A DNA stretch of 64,000 nucleotides from Oopsacas minuta (GCA_024704765.1 JAKMXF010000088.1:186001-250000), one strand, 5' to 3'. Counted from the first letter of the stretch, positions 9,983 to 31,882 are shown. A program made the numbers and translations. The notes: generated by a model from the sequence alone, not told the origin.

Positions 9983-11173
9983 CTAGAAAATTTGTAGTCC
10001 ATAGTTATTGTTATTAGACGAGACAATGAGTCTAGCATTGCTTGTAGTAACGATACCATAAGGACGAGAGAACTCTCCTTTACCATGGCCAACTTTCCCA
10101 ATCGTGCATACCAACACTCCTGCTTGATTATATATCAGAATAGTATTAGTTGTCCAATTGGAGATTAGGATATTATTCGCTACATCTAGACAGAAGAATA
10201 AAGTGGCGCCTCCACCATATGCAATAACACATTTAAGGTAATCACCAGTAAAATTGAATTGGTGAACTTTCTCAGGAATGTTGTAGCATAAAACAAACAT
10301 CTTATCCTTCGCGAACTTTATATCAACAGGCTTAATTACGCTTTCATGCGAAATAAATCTTTCGAAGTTTAATTCTGAGTCTAAAATTGATATTCTACTA
10401 TTCTTATTCTCTGGTATAAACAGACATCCATCTGTTCTCACTGCTATCTGCATTGGGAAATGAAATTCACCTTTACCTGATCCTTCCTGTCCTGTCTTCA
10501 TTAAGAATTTATAATTAAAACGCTGATACTTCAGGACAGAACATTGATTCCTATCTGACACATAAATATATGATTCATTCAGTGCTATGCCCCATGGATT
10601 CACTAGCTCATTAGAACCAAAATCGTTGACGAATTCACCTGATGAGGTGAATATCTTTATTGAAGAATTATCAGAAACAAAAATCAAGCCAGACCCCTCT
10701 TCATAAGCAATACCTCTTGGTCCATCGAACTCATCTCTTCCACTACCTTCCTTCCCTACAGCTACAACAGGCATCTTCATTACAGAATAATTAGGTACTA
10801 TCAGTTCACTAGCTTTAATGATTTTACCTAACTTGCTAATCTCTTGTTCAATAATGTGAGAATTGATTTGGAAATCTAATTCAAAAGATGTAGTAGAGAG
10901 AGTTAGTTTATGAAGTTTCTCTTCAATCTCAGAAATATTTATTGTTTGTAAAGTATCTGCTGTCTTTTGTTTCATAACTTCCAAATTTTTCTCAGTTTGT
11001 AACATATCTGCTGTGAACTTATCATACTCATTCCGATAATCATTGAGCTCAGTTAATAGAGATATCTTTCTACTAAGTACAAGCTGAACCAGTTTATCAA
11101 ATGCACCTTCTATCTGTTTAGCAACTTTATCCAGTGGGTGACAATTTTGGTTTTCATCGATAATACTAGCCAT
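9983..11173 (-). CDS. Coiled-coil + NHL-repeat beta-propeller protein (TRIM-NHL-like, no RING/B-box)
   Basis: Open 396-aa frame from the ATG at 11173 (the ORF track starts at an upstream TTG). Helical N-terminus followed by repeats such as FDGPRGIA, GEFHFPMQIAV and GEFSRPYGIV. Confidence 0.88.
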   Translation of the reverse strand: MASIIDENQNCHPLDKVAKQIEGAFDKLVQLVLSRKISLLTELNDYRNEYDKFTADMLQTEKNLEVMKQKTADTLQTINISEIEEKLHKLTLSTTSFELDFQINSHIIEQEISKLGKIIKASELIVPNYSVMKMPVVAVGKEGSGRDEFDGPRGIAYEEGSGLIFVSDNSSIKIFTSSGEFVNDFGSNELVNPWGIALNESYIYVSDRNQCSVLKYQRFNYKFLMKTGQEGSGKGEFHFPMQIAVRTDGCLFIPENKNSRISILDSELNFERFISHESVIKPVDIKFAKDKMFVLCYNIPEKVHQFNFTGDYLKCVIAYGGGATLFFCLDVANNILISNWTTNTILIYNQAGVLVCTIGKVGHGKGEFSRPYGIVTTSNARLIVSSNNNNYGLQIF

Positions 11174-11302
11174 CAACGATAGCTAGATTAGGTTTCTTAA
11201 TAGTTAGAGTAATCAAATAAAGAGAAATTACAGTATGCCGACAGCATAGTATATTCATCATGAGTACACTATGCTCACAGTCGTAAGTGATAACGGGAAT
11301 TG

Positions 11303-21466: not shown

Positions 21467-22095
21467 TCAAAAACATCTTCTATTTACTCCATCTCTGCTA
21501 TAGATTATAATACAATCAGGAATACAAGCTTTGTCTGTGTACAAGCATAGCTCATCATAGTTTAGATTTACTCCAGCTTTACCATATATAGAGTTGTATC
21601 CAGCATCTGGACTAACTCTATTGATATCATCCTTATACTCTATCTGTTTTTTACCAGGAGCACACTTCACATAAAACATAGCACGATATCCATAGCTAGC
21701 ATCGCCAAGAGTATAATCGTGACACTTCGAACTCTCAGGAGCAAAGTAGAGTCCCTTCCCGAAGCGAGTGAATTTGACATTGGTGCCAACCTTTTTTATG
21801 TCGAAGCTTTGTTTGGATACCTGACATATTGTGCATTCAGGAAGGTTACACAATGAATTTGACTTCAGAAGATCACATTTTATTTTACAACCATGAAAAT
21901 AGTATTCAGTATTAGCGTTTTCTGTCAGTGCGTTCTTGTAGGAGTCAAACATTACGTCAGCCCCTCTAGGTTGTACTCTAAATATGGCTGTTACTGGCGG
22001 ACAAGCCCCTTTATTCAGGTTCCAATTATTTTTGAACTGTGTGCATGCTGAAACGAAGTCTGGATGGTTTTCATCAAGTTTCAAAACACCAAATG
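21467..22095 (-). CDS. PARP-like ADP-ribosyltransferase domain (last exon)
   Basis: YFHGC (H), RFGKGLYFA (Y) and NYDELCLY (E) form the H-Y-E triad, with a Cys cluster after the HG motif. The acceptor ttcag|c at 22096/22095 joins the upstream exon in phase 1 (HYA-A-FGVLKLDEN). Confidence 0.85.
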
Positions 22096-26994: not shown

Positions 26995-29900
26995 ATGGCA
27001 GAAAAATCACACAAACGTGGAGAGATCATAACTAAGGAAATACTTCCTGGAGATATGTTAAAGTTACCTTCAGATATTTACGAAGCTGATGTCATTTCAA
27101 GAAAAAAGATATTACACCGAGGGATGCAAATGGTTGAGAACAGTTTGATAGCACACAGAACCTGTAATTCAGCTATAATATTCGTGTATGGATTAAGTGG
27201 AGCTGGTAAAACATCTTCACTGAATCATTTGTTTGGATTTGAGCTCATTAAAATAATTGATAAACATGCAGCTGACACCAAATTTGTAACAGAATATGTA
27301 GCGATAATGGAGAGTCAAGCTTGGAGGGTGAGTAATTTACAGATTGTATTCATAGATATGCCAGGTTGGAGTGATGGAAGAGAAGAGAGTCAAGATGTCC
27401 GGAATATGGCCTTGATTGATCAGTTTATCTCAAATCATCCTTTTCTTGGTTCTAACATCTACAAATGTTATCCAAATATTGTTATGATTGCAATCAATGC
27501 AAATGATACAAGATTAAAAGGTGAGAACTCGCAGATTGTACGCATGTTCCGTGCACTATCAAAGCTTAATGTTGTTGACAAGGACAGATCTAATATTCTC
27601 ATTATTCTGACACATGTCAATAATGTTGGAAAGAAGAGTTTCAAGGAAAGACTGAAGGAAATAATCGACATTGTAGAAGACTTAACAATTTGCTATCTAA
27701 AAGCTAAGCCTGTTATAGTTTACCTTGAAAACGATTATGAAGAACATGAGTTGGAACAAATTGGAGATTGGACTATTCTCAAAGATAAAACTCTACAACC
27801 AAAGAATGTGTTTGATGGAATGATTCAACTAACAAGCAAATACAAGGATGAGGTCGGACAAGAAGCGATACGACTATATTTTGCTTCTAGAGGCAGTAAC
27901 AGGCCTGTCATTAGATCACAATTAAAACATGAAGTAATCATGGAAGACCAAATTAGAAAATGGAAAATGATACTTGGACAAGAATTCTCTGCTCTACCCA
28001 TTAATGAAGTGAATGCAGCTCTACAGAAGTACGCAAAATCTAATCCAGATAAGTATTCAACTAACAGATTAGTGCTACTTATGATTGAGTTAGATGCTCA
28101 CTCACTCACAAAGTTAAATACTCTTTGGTCCATGAGGCTAAATCAGGTGCAAGAGGAATTAGATCCTTACAAACTGTCTCAGCTGGAGAATGAGGCCTTA
28201 TTAGAGGGTTGTGGGGTTAAGCCTTATCAGTTCCCAGATATCCTACAACACATGGGATATGGAATAAAGGCAGAAACAGGGGAAGTTACTACAAATCCAG
28301 TTCTCAATCTAGAGAGTGATTGGCATGTCCAGAATGGTGTGAGTTTACCAAAATCCTTGCAGGCAGTGATTCCCAAAAATAAAATACGTGTAGAATGGAA
28401 ACGAAAGAACGATGATTTCTCTATAACTGAGAACATTAATAAATACGTAGAATCAATGTCACAAACCTTAGCTAAATACCAATTTCAGATTCTCTATAAT
28501 ATCTACACGATTAGGGTTTATACTTCTGAAAAGAAAATATTGGAGACTGAACTTACCCCTGCATTCAAACAAGCAGTATCAGCATTACCAGAAAATAGCG
28601 TAGCAGAGAATAATCTTGTGAACAGAGAGTATTTCCATTTCTTCAATAATTATGGGGAATGGGTTATAGTTGGTTGTGAGTGTGGAGGCAATTTACACGG
28701 AGAGGTGGAGCTGGAAGAGAAGGAAGTCGTAAACACACAGAAACACATCAATACATACATTTACAATTTACTGGACAGATTGGATACTGAGGAAACTACA
28801 GCTACGAAAGAGAAAACGAGTGATAGTGCCAGCAAGTTAGATGAGACATTCGAGTCATTCGGAAGTATAAAACTGGAGTGGGAGGGAGGATATTTACATG
28901 GAAAACCTGTAACTCTCAACAATCTAACTGCAGAATTATGGACAAGATGGAGAAACTCTCTCTACAAGAATCCTCAAAGGTTGAATACTTATAGCTCGAG
29001 AGAAGAAACAAGCTTACCTATTCACCAATTCGTTTCACTACTAAGTATTGACACTAGTACTCAGGTTATATTAGCGTACCCAATTTACTATAAAGATGAA
29101 TTAATTGGCACACATCATAACCACTTAGATACTTGGAAAGATTGTCAACCAACAAATTCTAATTTGATAATATCTGATGAAACAGTTATAACGAAAAGAG
29201 AATCGGCATCTATTGCTTCAAAATCTCTTACACTCGATATCGCTAGTGGGGGATTTCCAGAAAATGCTACTGTGATAGAAGGCACTAGCAATTCTCACAA
29301 TGTAAGTGATATTAGTAAAATAAAACTAGGCGATAAAATACTTTGCAAAGATCCTTGGGAATTAAAATATAATGAAGTAATGAAAATTCATTGTAGTGAA
29401 GAAGGAAAGGAATTAGAATATCTGCACTTTATACATGAACATGGTGAATTTCTTATTGGACAGAAACATACTATTGTACGAAGTGTTTCCCATCCCATAG
29501 AGGCAATTGACATGGTCTTAGCAAATAACTTTCAGCAAGGAGAGTATTTACTTTTCTTAGATAAGAAACAAAATAGAGTAATTAAATCAAGGGTGAAAGA
29601 TATTAGAATTGAAAAAGGAAAGGGGCACTACTCTCTAAAGGTGGAGAATGGTATGGCAGATATTGCAGTAAATCAAGTTCTAACTGGCGATGAGGAAGAA
29701 GCTTGTTTCCCAGGAAATGCAGGTGTATCATCGAGAGGAGGAGAACAAGTAAGGATGGATGAATTGAAGATAGGGGATTATGTGCTAAGCATCCATCCTA
29801 CTACACACAAACCTGTTTATTCCCAAGTTTATCTCTGGGCACATAGAGATCCACACATCAAAGCCAAATTCCTCCACATCACACATCCTCAAGGACACCT

Positions 29901-30399
29901 GCACATCTCTGCTAACCATCTCATCTTGAGTGGAGACAAGAAGAGACCAGTAGCAGCTCATCAACTGCGAGTGGAAGACACTATCCACTTCCTGTCTCCT
30001 TACATACTACAGCAACAGCAGCTGAATGGTGAAGAGAGAAAAGAGAGAAATTATCATACACTAATCTCAGTGCCTGTATTAGAGATACACAGCTGTATAC
30101 AGATGGGATACTACGCTCCCTTCACCAAAAACGGACTGATTATAGTTGATAGCATAGCAGCTAGTGTGTACAGTGAGATCTCTACTCACTCTCTACTAGA
30201 CAGTAGCAGCAGCAGTTTATACAGTGTGGCTAGTGGAATTATACACCAGTTTGGTATACATAGGATGGGTCAGTATGTGTTGGCGCCTTTACGTGTAGGA
30301 TATAAGTTGGGTGTAGGGAGTGTACTCAGTAACCAAATGGATCCAAACACTCACATACACAAGTACTGCCAGTTGTTAATGAAGTATATCTCTCATTGA
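26995..30399 (+). CDS. GTPase - MACPF - Hint(degenerate) - Hint/Hog fusion protein, 1134 aa, intronless
   Basis: G1 GLSGAGKT (aa66-73), G3 DMPG (121-124), G4-like THVN (206-209). MACPF features GYG (~420), L-T-P-A-F, signature YGEWV-x6-GG (553-565) and W..SL..NP. Hint1 starts G753-F-P; Hint2 starts C904-F-P with SANH (972-975) and GYYAPFT..G.I.VD...ASVY. The tail includes HIHKYCQLL, which resembles a sterol-recognition region. Confidence 0.88.
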   Translation: MAEKSHKRGEIITKEILPGDMLKLPSDIYEADVISRKKILHRGMQMVENSLIAHRTCNSAIIFVYGLSGAGKTSSLNHLFGFELIKIIDKHAADTKFVTEYVAIMESQAWRVSNLQIVFIDMPGWSDGREESQDVRNMALIDQFISNHPFLGSNIYKCYPNIVMIAINANDTRLKGENSQIVRMFRALSKLNVVDKDRSNILIILTHVNNVGKKSFKERLKEIIDIVEDLTICYLKAKPVIVYLENDYEEHELEQIGDWTILKDKTLQPKNVFDGMIQLTSKYKDEVGQEAIRLYFASRGSNRPVIRSQLKHEVIMEDQIRKWKMILGQEFSALPINEVNAALQKYAKSNPDKYSTNRLVLLMIELDAHSLTKLNTLWSMRLNQVQEELDPYKLSQLENEALLEGCGVKPYQFPDILQHMGYGIKAETGEVTTNPVLNLESDWHVQNGVSLPKSLQAVIPKNKIRVEWKRKNDDFSITENINKYVESMSQTLAKYQFQILYNIYTIRVYTSEKKILETELTPAFKQAVSALPENSVAENNLVNREYFHFFNNYGEWVIVGCECGGNLHGEVELEEKEVVNTQKHINTYIYNLLDRLDTEETTATKEKTSDSASKLDETFESFGSIKLEWEGGYLHGKPVTLNNLTAELWTRWRNSLYKNPQRLNTYSSREETSLPIHQFVSLLSIDTSTQVILAYPIYYKDELIGTHHNHLDTWKDCQPTNSNLIISDETVITKRESASIASKSLTLDIASGGFPENATVIEGTSNSHNVSDISKIKLGDKILCKDPWELKYNEVMKIHCSEEGKELEYLHFIHEHGEFLIGQKHTIVRSVSHPIEAIDMVLANNFQQGEYLLFLDKKQNRVIKSRVKDIRIEKGKGHYSLKVENGMADIAVNQVLTGDEEEACFPGNAGVSSRGGEQVRMDELKIGDYVLSIHPTTHKPVYSQVYLWAHRDPHIKAKFLHITHPQGHLHISANHLILSGDKKRPVAAHQLRVEDTIHFLSPYILQQQQLNGEERKERNYHTLISVPVLEIHSCIQMGYYAPFTKNGLIIVDSIAASVYSEISTHSLLDSSSSSLYSVASGIIHQFGIHRMGQYVLAPLRVGYKLGVGSVLSNQMDPNTHIHKYCQLLMKYISH

Positions 30400-30553
30400 G
30401 TTTATATTTTGACACCTGTAATTAGGTCGTTTACTAATGATTAGCTAATTTTAATCATACTTGTCAATATTTTTATAATGAGCTGTCTAACCAGCAACCT
30501 AGGTTGCTAGAACTTTGTATATAGCAAACTAGGAGGTACATTTTCATTAATTA

Positions 30554-30950
30554 CGAGCCTTTAGCTCGTCGCTTCGCGATAAACTCAGCGCATTGCGCCT
30601 TGAGGTATCCATTATTCTCTAAATTGACGAACCTTTGAGTATTATAATATAGATATATTTAGAACAATGTAATGCACAAATTGACTTATTTTGTAAGATC
30701 ATCACCTTTGTCGCCGTTGAAGGAAGTATCTACTTGAATTTGAGATTTTGCAAATTTGTTTCCTTTATATTCATAAAAACAACAACACATTTACATATGA
30801 TTAAGTGAAGTTTTATTGAATTCTATTTACTTCCTTGATTAACAAGATAAATACATAGTTATGCGACAATTTCAAAATTGCATACCGAAATCCTTTCCTC
30901 GACAACGGACAAACAAACAAACAAACAACAATTGAGATTTAATAATATAG
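30554..30950 (-). mobile_element. Non-autonomous Helitron-like element, copy 1
   Basis: Reverse complement of the 31883..32347 element (with indels): 5' ctatattattaaatctcaattg, (tttg)n, and 3' gcgaagcgacgagctaaaggctcg|t. Confidence 0.7.
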
Positions 30951-30994
30951 CGCGCTTCGCTTGCTAGGTCGCTGCGCGAGGTTAGCTTAAATAT

Positions 30995-31210
30995 TATTCA
31001 AATTTCAAACTTCTATAATGTGTATTGGCTGAGCAGTGGTTAATAATGTGATTTTTTCAAAATCCAAAAGGTTGCCAATGACGTCATAATTTCGTCATGG
31101 GTTTGAATTTTCGTCCAAGACTCGAACTTGTCCGAGCCAGGCCCAAAATCAGCCCTTGGAGTCTTCCATTTTCTTCAATATATATACACATTTACACCTT
31201 TCTATGCAAA
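30995..31210 (+). repeat. Dispersed repeat (also at ~50089-50310 and partially at ~37801-37860)
   Basis: Shared text tattggctgagcagtggttaataa..aaaatccaaaa..aatgacgtcata..tgaattttcg.ccaagactcgaa..gccaggcccaaa..cagcccttgg.gtcttcc. Family not determined. Confidence 0.8.
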
Positions 31211-31882
31211 TACAAAAGCAAGCTAGAGATTAGGTTTCAACATCTTGTCAGGGGTAATTGGGTGCGTAGAGTCCGATTTTGAGAATTTCAGAGCTCATAA
31301 GTAACAAATTCGCAGATACGCCATTATATTTATGTTAATAGTTATTATATTAGTGCCAAATAATTAGAGAACTTAACTGCTTTATAGATGGCAAGTAATG
31401 CTGAAATAATTTGTTAACCTATTAGTTTGAATACATGTACTGTCGAGACAAGTACCACAGATTTCCTCTATGTACGCTAGGTATGCCCTCTCTTCTACCT
31501 TTACCAGAAATTCTATATCTGCCTTAGTTTAGATAATTGAATCGGGTTCAGACACAAAATTTGTATTTACCCAGCACGGAGAGTCAGCCCACCCAGAATT
31601 TCTCGTAGCCTCCCCCCTACTCTCGCATTCTGGCTACGGGCCTGCTTTGTTAGCCGGGACGGGATTTCAAACTCGGGGCAAAAATTATTCTACTATAGGA
31701 AGTGATGGTCCAAGGATCTGGCAAGCCCGGGGCCAGGACTTTCAAATCCGGAGCAAATGCTTCGTTTGCAACCATCCTGCCACTGCGTACCTCGATACTA
31801 AAAATCAGCCTCCAGCTTTTTCCCAACTCATGCGATCTTCCCCCCCCGTATATTCTAGAAGTTCGTGAATTGTCCTTTACAA

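Follow-up and report, generated by a model that had tools for sequence, protein, structure and literature searches.

A 64,000-nucleotide stretch of the glass sponge Oopsacas minuta (GCA_024704765.1 JAKMXF010000088.1:186001-250000), referred to here as the window, carries at positions 26995-30399 (+) a nuclear single-exon gene of this sponge whose product is built, in order, from a GTPase, a helical stalk, a MACPF domain, a flexible linker, a predicted pseudo-Hint and a Hog domain with a tail that resembles the Hedgehog sterol-recognition region (SRR). The best explanation of our results is that the gene belongs to a lineage-expanded family of cytosolic GTPase-MACPF-Hog proteins, in which the Hog would cleave itself from the rest and the remainder would act on membranes in a GTP-coupled manner, most plausibly in defence by analogy. 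We give this reading a probability of about 0.55. The features of the open reading frame (ORF) are as follows, with amino acid (aa) limits and the evidence for each.

26995..30399, plus strand: complete single-exon ORF, 1134 aa and a stop codon (ORF calling; full-length relatives of 1111-1160 aa)
27112..27894, plus strand: GTPase domain of the Toc34/GIMAP/septin class, aa 40-300 (Pfam MMR_HSR1; Toc34 superposition; invariant motifs)
27895..28218, plus strand: helical stalk or linker leading from GTPase to MACPF, aa 301-408 (AlphaFold2 helices at 317-406, predicted local distance difference test score (pLDDT) 82-94)
28219..29118, plus strand: MACPF domain, aa 409-708 (Pfam, E 2.9e-13; profile comparison with perforin; Foldseek; structural superposition)
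29119..29226, plus strand: variable linker, aa 709-744 (pLDDT below 50 at 702-720; variable, gapped alignment columns)
29227..29697, plus strand: putative pseudo-Hint (Hint1), aa 745-901 (fold match to Hedgehog Hint; Gly753 at the Cys1 position)
29701..29706, plus strand: predicted autocleavage site A903/C904 (C904-F-P-G-N invariant; C904 aligns to Hedgehog C258/C1)
29704..30174, plus strand: Hog-type Hint, aa 904-1060, with C904, H950, S972, H975 and V1058 (Pfam, PDB and Foldseek matches)
30175..30396, plus strand: helical tail resembling the SRR or adduct-recognition region (ARR), aa 1061-1134 (extent of the Pfam profile match; alignment with the SRR of Drosophila HhC)

A complete gene for a probably cytosolic multidomain protein

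The ORF runs from an ATG to its stop without interruption and is the sole ORF of at least 100 aa between 24 and 34 kb of the window. Upstream of the ATG the frame stays open for 8 codons only, and the same "MAE..." start is shared with relatives; we therefore take the ORF as a complete single-exon gene model. One sequencing run (X5) holds a relative that is 96-97% identical to the window, represented by four short, low-depth contigs within the ORF (window 27170-28460 and 29990-30377). The 40 differences from the window ORF divide evenly into 20 synonymous and 20 non-synonymous, with 22 of them at third codon positions, a pattern that indicates coding constraint, though not a tight one. The run is labelled as another organism. 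It may come from a sister species or population, or the sample may have been mislabelled, and the contigs may derive from a relative's DNA or from its RNA.

No signal peptide was found, the N-terminus being hydrophilic, and no membrane-spanning segment, the highest 19-residue Kyte-Doolittle mean over the whole protein being 1.27. From its sequence, the protein looks cytosolic. A preliminary description of this stretch, made from the sequence alone, had proposed a cytosolic product of one intronless 1134-aa ORF in which a P-loop GTPase, a MACPF domain and two Hint domains follow one another. The uninterrupted ORF bears out the first part, the hydropathy results support the second, and Pfam together with the structure models confirms the four-module architecture, with tool-derived limits close to those first given (aa 55-300, 415-690, 753-898 and 904-1134).

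The GTPase and the stalk

The G1 motif GLSGAGKT lies at aa 66-73 (27190-27213) and the G3 motif DMPG at aa 121-124, extended to DMPGW from aa 121, just as had been proposed for a P-loop GTPase. Within the family alignment, G66, G69, G71, K72, D121, P123, G124 and T206 are invariant. The canonical G4 motif NKxD is absent from the window GTPase; LTHV stands instead at aa 205-208 and is the likely G4, a motif that we take to resemble the Toc-type G4.

Pfam MMR_HSR1 matched aa 62-135 just above its cutoff (23.6 against 21.9 bits), and the Pfam thresholds for AIG1 and Septin were not reached by the window protein. Matches of the paralogs to AIG1 and Septin were mostly below the curated cutoffs as well, the Septin cutoff being reached in two paralogs that have no Hint. 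A single-sequence search of the PDB with aa 1-480 gave no match, and a family profile was needed to obtain any; this profile matches septins and Toc34 by sequence.

The N-terminal part was modelled with AlphaFold2 (aa 1-720, from a family alignment of 35 sequences), with a mean pLDDT of 80.9. Residues 45-285 of the model superpose on Toc34 and Toc33 (Z 18.5 and 18.0, respectively; range 18.5-17.6) and also on GIMAP7 (Z 14.4) and GIMAP2 (Z 14.1). The septin-like TRAFAC GTPases, namely, Toc34/Toc33, GIMAP2/7 and septins, are thus the best structural matches, and unlike them the window GTPase sits inside a multidomain protein. Predictions of a GTPase homodimer in complex with GTP scored 0.00, 0.35 and 0.00, which is evidence neither way. 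The stalk that follows is conserved across the family, including the members that have no Hint.

The MACPF domain

Pfam MACPF (PF01823) matched aa 483-663 with E 2.9e-13, scoring 50.9 bits where the cutoff is 21.5. The signature YGEWVIVGCECGG, written YGEWV...GG in short, occupies aa 553-565 (28651-28689), from Y553 to G565, and has the form (Y/W)-G-x-x-x-x6-G-G. The second GG motif, LEWEGG, covers aa 627-632 (W629-x-G631-G632), and G554, G564, G565, W629 and G632 are invariant in the family alignment. The family profile matches perforin-1 (E 4e-7), C6 (E 1.3e-5) and C9 (E 1.8e-4), and four motifs fall in register in the profile alignments: F-K-x-A-x-x-L-P, Y-G-...-G-G, W-x-G-G and W-x-x-S-L(-x-x-P).

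The model of aa 409-708 superposes on GNIP1Aa (Z 15.2, 245 residues aligned), Mpf2Ba1 (Z 14.4), Plu-MACPF and perforin (Z 13.2-13.3, with 253 residues aligned for perforin) and MPEG1 (Z 12.8-12.9), while Foldseek matched the region to perforin with E 2.9e-11. Astrotactin-2 was also among the structural matches of the N-terminal model. The signature that had been reported at canonical spacing in aa 553-565 is therefore confirmed by motif position, Pfam match and fold, and the region singled out for a profile and fold check, aa 415-690, matched with the same Pfam E-value and with Z of 13-15.

The limits of the two transmembrane hairpin regions were set here from the perforin register of the family-profile alignment. 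In a typical MACPF domain these regions, TMH1 and TMH2, are helical clusters of ~45-60 aa that can refold into membrane hairpins. TMH2 of the window protein has 51 aa (aa 575-625; family range 46-52 aa). TMH1 has 21 aa (aa 471-491, between a strand at 464-470 and one at 492-508) and is polar. The length of TMH1 differs by clade, from 18-25 aa in the window's own to 36-43 aa in the LOD99_11391 clade and 50-58 aa in the LOD99_14046 clade. With only 21 aa in TMH1, a canonical barrel of four strands per subunit is doubtful for the window paralog alone. A non-lytic role would fit the short TMH1, and so would assembly together with long-TMH1 paralogs. Members of complement C6-C9 mix long and short hairpins, which the mix of TMH1 lengths among the sponge clades resembles. 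Of the pore-forming MACPF that was first described, the fold and the signature stand, and pore formation is made less likely by the short TMH1.

Perforin, MPEG1/perforin-2, complement C6-C9 and GNIP1Aa/Mpf2Ba1 share with the window protein the MACPF fold and signature, the second GG motif and W-x-x-S-L-x-x-P. Unlike these pore formers, the window protein is apparently cytosolic, has no C2, EGF, TSP, LDLa or MABP domain, has a truncated TMH1 and is fused to GTPase and Hint modules.

A pseudo-Hint before a probably active Hint

Residues 702-744, at the end of the MACPF domain and through the linker, are modelled with low confidence and are variable. A second structure model covers aa 735-1134, and in it Hint1 has a pLDDT of 80-94. 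Residues 19-167 of this model superpose on residues 258-402 of the Drosophila Hedgehog Hint (1at0) with Z 22.0 and a root-mean-square deviation of 1.6 Å over 143 residues, which brings model residue 19 (Gly753) onto Hedgehog Cys258. The surrounding sequence is GGFPEN at aa 752, with G753 and P755 invariant in 21 sequences. Because an invariant Gly stands at the Cys1 position, Hint1 should be unable to start the N-S acyl shift. In an alignment of both Hints with Drosophila HhC, its sequence taken from PMC12054796, Hint1 has G / C / G / H / - at the Hedgehog pentad C1/D46/T69/H72/C143. Hint1 is thus, as judged from sequence and model, a catalytically dead pseudo-Hint that has the fold and no Cys, Ser or Thr at position 1. 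It also has a weak Pfam match to PT-HINT. We considered Hint1 as an intein-like module for C-terminal cleavage and rejected this, given that the Hog-type motif "IAVNQV" lies in its last strand, that no His-Asn precedes C904 and that its closest structural match is the Hedgehog Hint. Two tandem Hint domains had been described, and both folds were found; that the first is dead had been left out.

Pfam Hint (PF01079) matched the protein with E 1.1e-41 in two stretches, the best of them at aa 902-1130, over the second Hint, which carries the profile match to position 206 of 213. For the second Hint against the Hedgehog Hint in the PDB, phmmer gave E 2.8e-5 (6tyy), identity is 25% to 1at0 and 6tyy, and Foldseek gave E 4e-8 (1at0). 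Model confidence is lower here (pLDDT 63-79), and the tail helices (342-399 of the model) are of low confidence. The site reads ACFPGN at aa 903, with no variation in C904-F-P-G-N; of the 21 sequences, 90% or more share H950, S972 and H975. At the same pentad the Hog has C904 / H950 / S972 / H975 / V1058, so that the TxxH motif is present as S972-x-x-H975, with Ser for Thr, and His950 rather than Asp stands at the general-base position. The PDB structure 6tyy is the Hedgehog D46H mutant, and D46H still autoprocesses in cells (PMC12054796), which makes H950 a plausible functional substitute for Asp46. Two motifs in the tail, G-x-Y-V-L-A-P-L-R and I-H-K-Y-C-Q-L-L, align to the Drosophila SRR (GLAPMR and IHWY), in agreement with the short Hog-like tail first reported, now placed at aa 1061-1134.

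Self-cleavage at A903/C904 is the natural prediction from the retained Cys1, SxxH, H950 and SRR motifs. Formation of the thioester and cleavage there are likely by this comparison, and transfer of a lipid by the Hog is possible, not assured. Hedgehog HhC (Hint and SRR; 1at0, 6tyy) shares with the window Hog the fold, Cys1, T/SxxH and the SRR motifs. It differs in having Asp46 and Cys143, where the window Hog has His and Val. The window protein further differs from Hedgehog in that it has no signal peptide, that the cargo is a 903-aa GTPase-MACPF-pseudoHint instead of the Hedge domain and that a dead Hint precedes the live one.

A family of 13 genes with a homogenised Hog

We searched the 61.46-Mb, 365-contig genome assembly and found 24 matching pieces, which resolve into 13 genes. 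Most of them lie in tandem arrays, and all are single-exon or nearly so. Five have two Hints, five have one and three have none, as listed here by contig.

Pseudo-Hint and Hog (five genes): the window gene (C88), C33:457343-460762, C33:461128-464586 and two on C186
Hog only (five genes): two on C133, C33:464859-467882, C33:609507-613211 and one on C45
No Hint (three genes): C33:452226, C33:454809 and C45:21336

The named O. minuta proteins among them are LOD99_14045 and LOD99_14046 (C33), LOD99_11391 (C186) and LOD99_10591 (C45), and deposited Oopsacas proteins are called only "hypothetical", "MACPF domain-containing" or "Hint domain-containing". Dozens of relatives, deposited as hypothetical proteins, were also found in related assemblies, and at least seven family genes follow one another on a 58-kb contig from one of these, an ENA assembly. 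The protein is therefore not unique. The Hog-only paralog C33:609507-613211 is 1234 aa long, has ~290 extra residues between MACPF and Hog that gave no Pfam match, and shows no detectable match to the stalk.

Identity between neighbouring genes was observed to depend strongly on the module compared.

C33:457343 and C33:461128 (neighbours): N-terminal part 36% aa, 51% nucleotide (nt); Hog 91% aa, 96% nt
C133 pair (337247-343532): N-terminal part 38% aa; Hog 81% aa
One-Hint C33:464859 and its two-Hint neighbours: N-terminal part 33-36% aa; Hog 73% aa

At the nucleotide level, the Hog is 96% identical between the C33 neighbours and 85% identical in the C133 pair, against 51-52% in the GTPase-MACPF parts. 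A similar pattern holds across assemblies in the alignment, where Hog variants are assembly-specific. By these identities, strong constraint acts on the Hog module and its copies are homogenised between paralogs, which is domain-restricted concerted evolution; they point to gene conversion or module swapping behind it.

Distribution and published relatives

A GTPase-stalk-MACPF profile was searched against 1.84 billion cluster representatives, returning 750 proteins at E ≤1e-3 and 179 at E ≤1e-30, many of which span the whole profile. Among those characterised, the GTPase and MACPF occur together without a Hint in the soft coral Xenia sp. (XP_046852782, P0057) and in the springtail Orchesella dallaii (CAL8121548 and CAL8138956; P0092 and P0103). 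Two metagenomic contigs, of which one comes from TARA Oceans, carry them with a Hint. Given its Hint-less occurrence in coral and springtail, GTPase-stalk-MACPF would be an older animal module to which Hog domains were added. In both Xenia and Orchesella the core is preceded by N-terminal extensions of 240-400 aa, and that of Xenia holds a second P-loop-like stretch.

Our literature search found no published AIG1/GIMAP-MACPF fusion, nor any paper joining MACPF with Oopsacas, MACPF with hexactinellids or "Hint domain" with sponge. The architecture is thus a combination of known modules for which no describing paper was found. The closest published arrangement on the GTPase-Hint side is that of GmGIN1 from Glomus mosseae, in which an AIG1/IAN-like GTPase lies N-terminal to a Hog, with no signal peptide (PMC2362128), so the comparison with it that had been made before was correct. 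GmGIN1 and the AIG1-Hint proteins of Mucoromycota resemble the window protein at the level of domain order, in placing a GTPase before a bona fide Hog with no signal peptide. They differ in having no MACPF, stalk or pseudo-Hint and in measuring ~430-660 aa against 1134 aa. A Protein Atlas feature search, in which every score was below 0.8 and serves as a lead only, returned a feature-level look-alike at 0.77, the Mucoromycota cluster "AIG1-type G domain-containing protein" (Hint 100%, AIG1 100%).

Fusions of AIG1 with HINT have been published for amphioxus and fungi; the amphioxus GIMAP-like proteins combine CARD, AIG1 and HINT, and AIG1-HINT was called unique to amphioxus among animals (PMC12373286). 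This claim does not hold, since Oopsacas has ten genes in which an AIG1-like GTPase is followed by a Hint. Like the sponge proteins, the amphioxus ones pair a GIMAP-class GTPase with a C-terminal HINT, and their gene family is variable and defence-associated; they are set apart from the sponge family by a CARD, by having one to three AIG1 domains and by the lack of a MACPF.

Genomic surroundings

The other long ORFs of the window are of animal type by Pfam, encoding TALE homeobox, sulfotransferase, PARP, Rpn13, NHL-repeat and ankyrin-repeat proteins. With ordinary animal genes around it, contamination or a fungal origin of the gene is not credible. An origin in Glomeromycota had been considered on account of the likeness to GIN1 and the low GC content, and it was rejected, the relatives being O. 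minuta proteins. Within the window we saw nothing that suggests a functional tie between the ORF and its PARP, NHL, ankyrin, Rpn13, sulfotransferase or TALE homeobox neighbours.

The PARP ORF lies at 21467-22084 (-) and matches the catalytic domain with E 1.9e-9. Two NHL-repeat beta-propeller ORFs, at 52641-53930 (+) and 9983-11176 (-), are long single exons, as is a 1468-aa ankyrin-repeat ORF at 56435-60841 (+), eight stretches of which match the Ank_2 profile. The sequence directly downstream of the ORF, window 30425-31300, is repeated at very high copy. In each of the four runs with the locus, summed contig depth climbs there from ~50-200 to 10^3-10^5, loose ends and alternative joints are numerous, and internal repeats are limited to weak ones. 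We regard this sequence as a probable mobile element, dispersed in the genome, or a satellite.

Proposed mechanism and alternatives

In the reading that we favour, the Hog would perform an N-to-S acyl shift at C904, aided by S972 and H975, and the nucleophile that then resolves the thioester could be a sterol or another lipid, with H950 activating it, or else water or a thiol. The cut at A903/C904 would yield a 903-aa GTPase-MACPF-pseudoHint fragment, possibly with a lipid at its C-terminus, and a 231-aa Hog fragment. The GTPase would couple its nucleotide state to self-association on a membrane, as other GTPases of its class do, and the MACPF domain would then bind, remodel or perforate that membrane. 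In doing so it may join paralogs of full-length TMH1 to form mixed assemblies. By analogy, the most likely role would be cell-autonomous defence against intracellular microbes or symbionts. The basis for this role is confined to the analogy with GIMAP/IRG/GBP proteins and perforin-2, the copy number and the fast-diverging N-terminal halves. We infer both the sterol anchor and the pore, and likewise the immune role.

Measured against this mechanism, the claims of the preliminary description fared unevenly. Cleavage at A903/C904 with release of GTPase-MACPF-Hint1 is supported as a prediction by Cys1, SxxH, H950 and the SRR motifs, lipid anchoring of the N-terminal product by the Hedgehog route is weakened by Val1058, and the label "immune effector", being an analogy, is not supported.

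Several observations weigh against our reading. The Val at the Hedgehog Cys143 position is nearly invariant in the window's clade, and Cys143 is required for Hedgehog autoprocessing, in which it forms a branched thioester (PMC12054796); sterol ligation by the Hedgehog route is uncertain for this reason. Among the paralogs of this genome, Hog types B to D have a Cys two residues before this position. In P0060 and P0079, the metagenomic relatives with GTPase, MACPF and Hint, the Cys143 equivalent is present, which argues that the sponge type-A Hog lost a catalytic residue. Immediately ahead of the cut stands an Ala, at a variable position, and not Gly. In the MACPF domain, TMH1 is short and polar, as described above, and TMH2, in which 11 acidic residues outnumber 6 basic ones, has a best beta-amphipathic moment of 2.08 compared to 2.91 in perforin and 2.15 in C6. 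No membrane-binding accessory domain of the C2, EGF or TSP type was detected in the window protein. Finally, no RNA run was found for the locus. The runs that hold it (X1-X4) have contigs that cover intergenic DNA evenly and are therefore genomic.

One alternative, possible though in our view rather unlikely, is that the Hog serves purely as a switch for proteolytic release or activation. The C904 thioester would be hydrolysed or thiolysed with no lipid transfer, much as Hints release cargo in bacterial polymorphic toxins, and the fragment would be soluble and reach membranes through its GTPase or MACPF domain. Val1058 speaks for this alternative, as do the weak PT-HINT match on Hint1 and the cytosolic setting, which contrasts with the ER lumen of Hedgehog processing. 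So do the three paralogs and the coral and springtail relatives that lack any Hint, from which it follows that a membrane anchor is not intrinsic to the core. Set against these, both SRR motifs are kept in the tail, where they count as some of the best-conserved stretches of the whole protein. The general-base His is conserved at 90% or more, a role that simple hydrolysis would not need, and the near-identity of the Hog between paralogs argues for more than a passive cut site.

A somewhat less probable alternative is that the MACPF domain is non-lytic, of the astrotactin/BRINP/Torso-like type, and binds or scaffolds membranes in trafficking, signalling or syncytial tissue. The TMH1 of 18-25 aa in the window's clade, the polar and acidic TMH2 with its modest beta-amphipathicity and the appearance of astrotactin-2 among the structural matches favour this, and there is no sign of microbial induction. 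However, both GG motifs, the signature and a TMH2 of 46-52 aa are kept family-wide, sister clades in the same tandem arrays have a TMH1 of 36-58 aa, and expansion in copy number with fast N-terminal divergence is more typical of defence genes.

We hold as doubtful the more specific proposal that the Hog lipidates the 903-aa fragment and that paralogs with long and short TMH1 together form a hetero-oligomeric pore, similar to the membrane attack complex, on the membranes of intracellular microbes. Very improbable, lastly, is that the ORF represents a contaminant, a horizontally acquired fungal-type gene or a copy that is unexpressed or in decay (retrocopy, pseudogene-to-be): a single exon in an animal genome, the lack of an RNA run, the high-copy repeat at 30425-31300 and the fact that AIG1-Hint fusions are otherwise best known from Mucoromycota would fit, but all 1134 of 1134 codons are intact with catalytic and structural motifs conserved, the 13 paralogs are alike in exon structure, differences from the close relative are biased to third positions, the gene sits among animal genes on a scaffold of ~865 kb and its closest relatives all belong to the same family and are not fungal.

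Significance

For work on MACPF proteins, these genes would represent a perforin-like family that is coupled to a GTPase and has no signal peptide, with a core found across sponges, a soft coral and a springtail. For work on Hedgehog, they offer a natural Hog with a general-base His and no Cys143, which could help to tell which residues autoprocessing needs and bears on whether sterols can be ligated in the cytosol to cargo that does not signal. They also extend the GIMAP-HINT theme of animal immunity to a sponge, as candidate effectors of cell-autonomous defence, and give genome evolution a case in which one module is homogenised between neighbours (96% against 51% nt on C33) while the rest of the gene diverges. 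If the doubtful proposal of a lipidated fragment in a hetero-oligomeric pore is true, Hedgehog-type lipid ligation would occur outside secreted signalling and would arm a cytosolic, GTP-gated, perforin-like protein, and early animals would have had a cell-autonomous immune system with no described counterpart.

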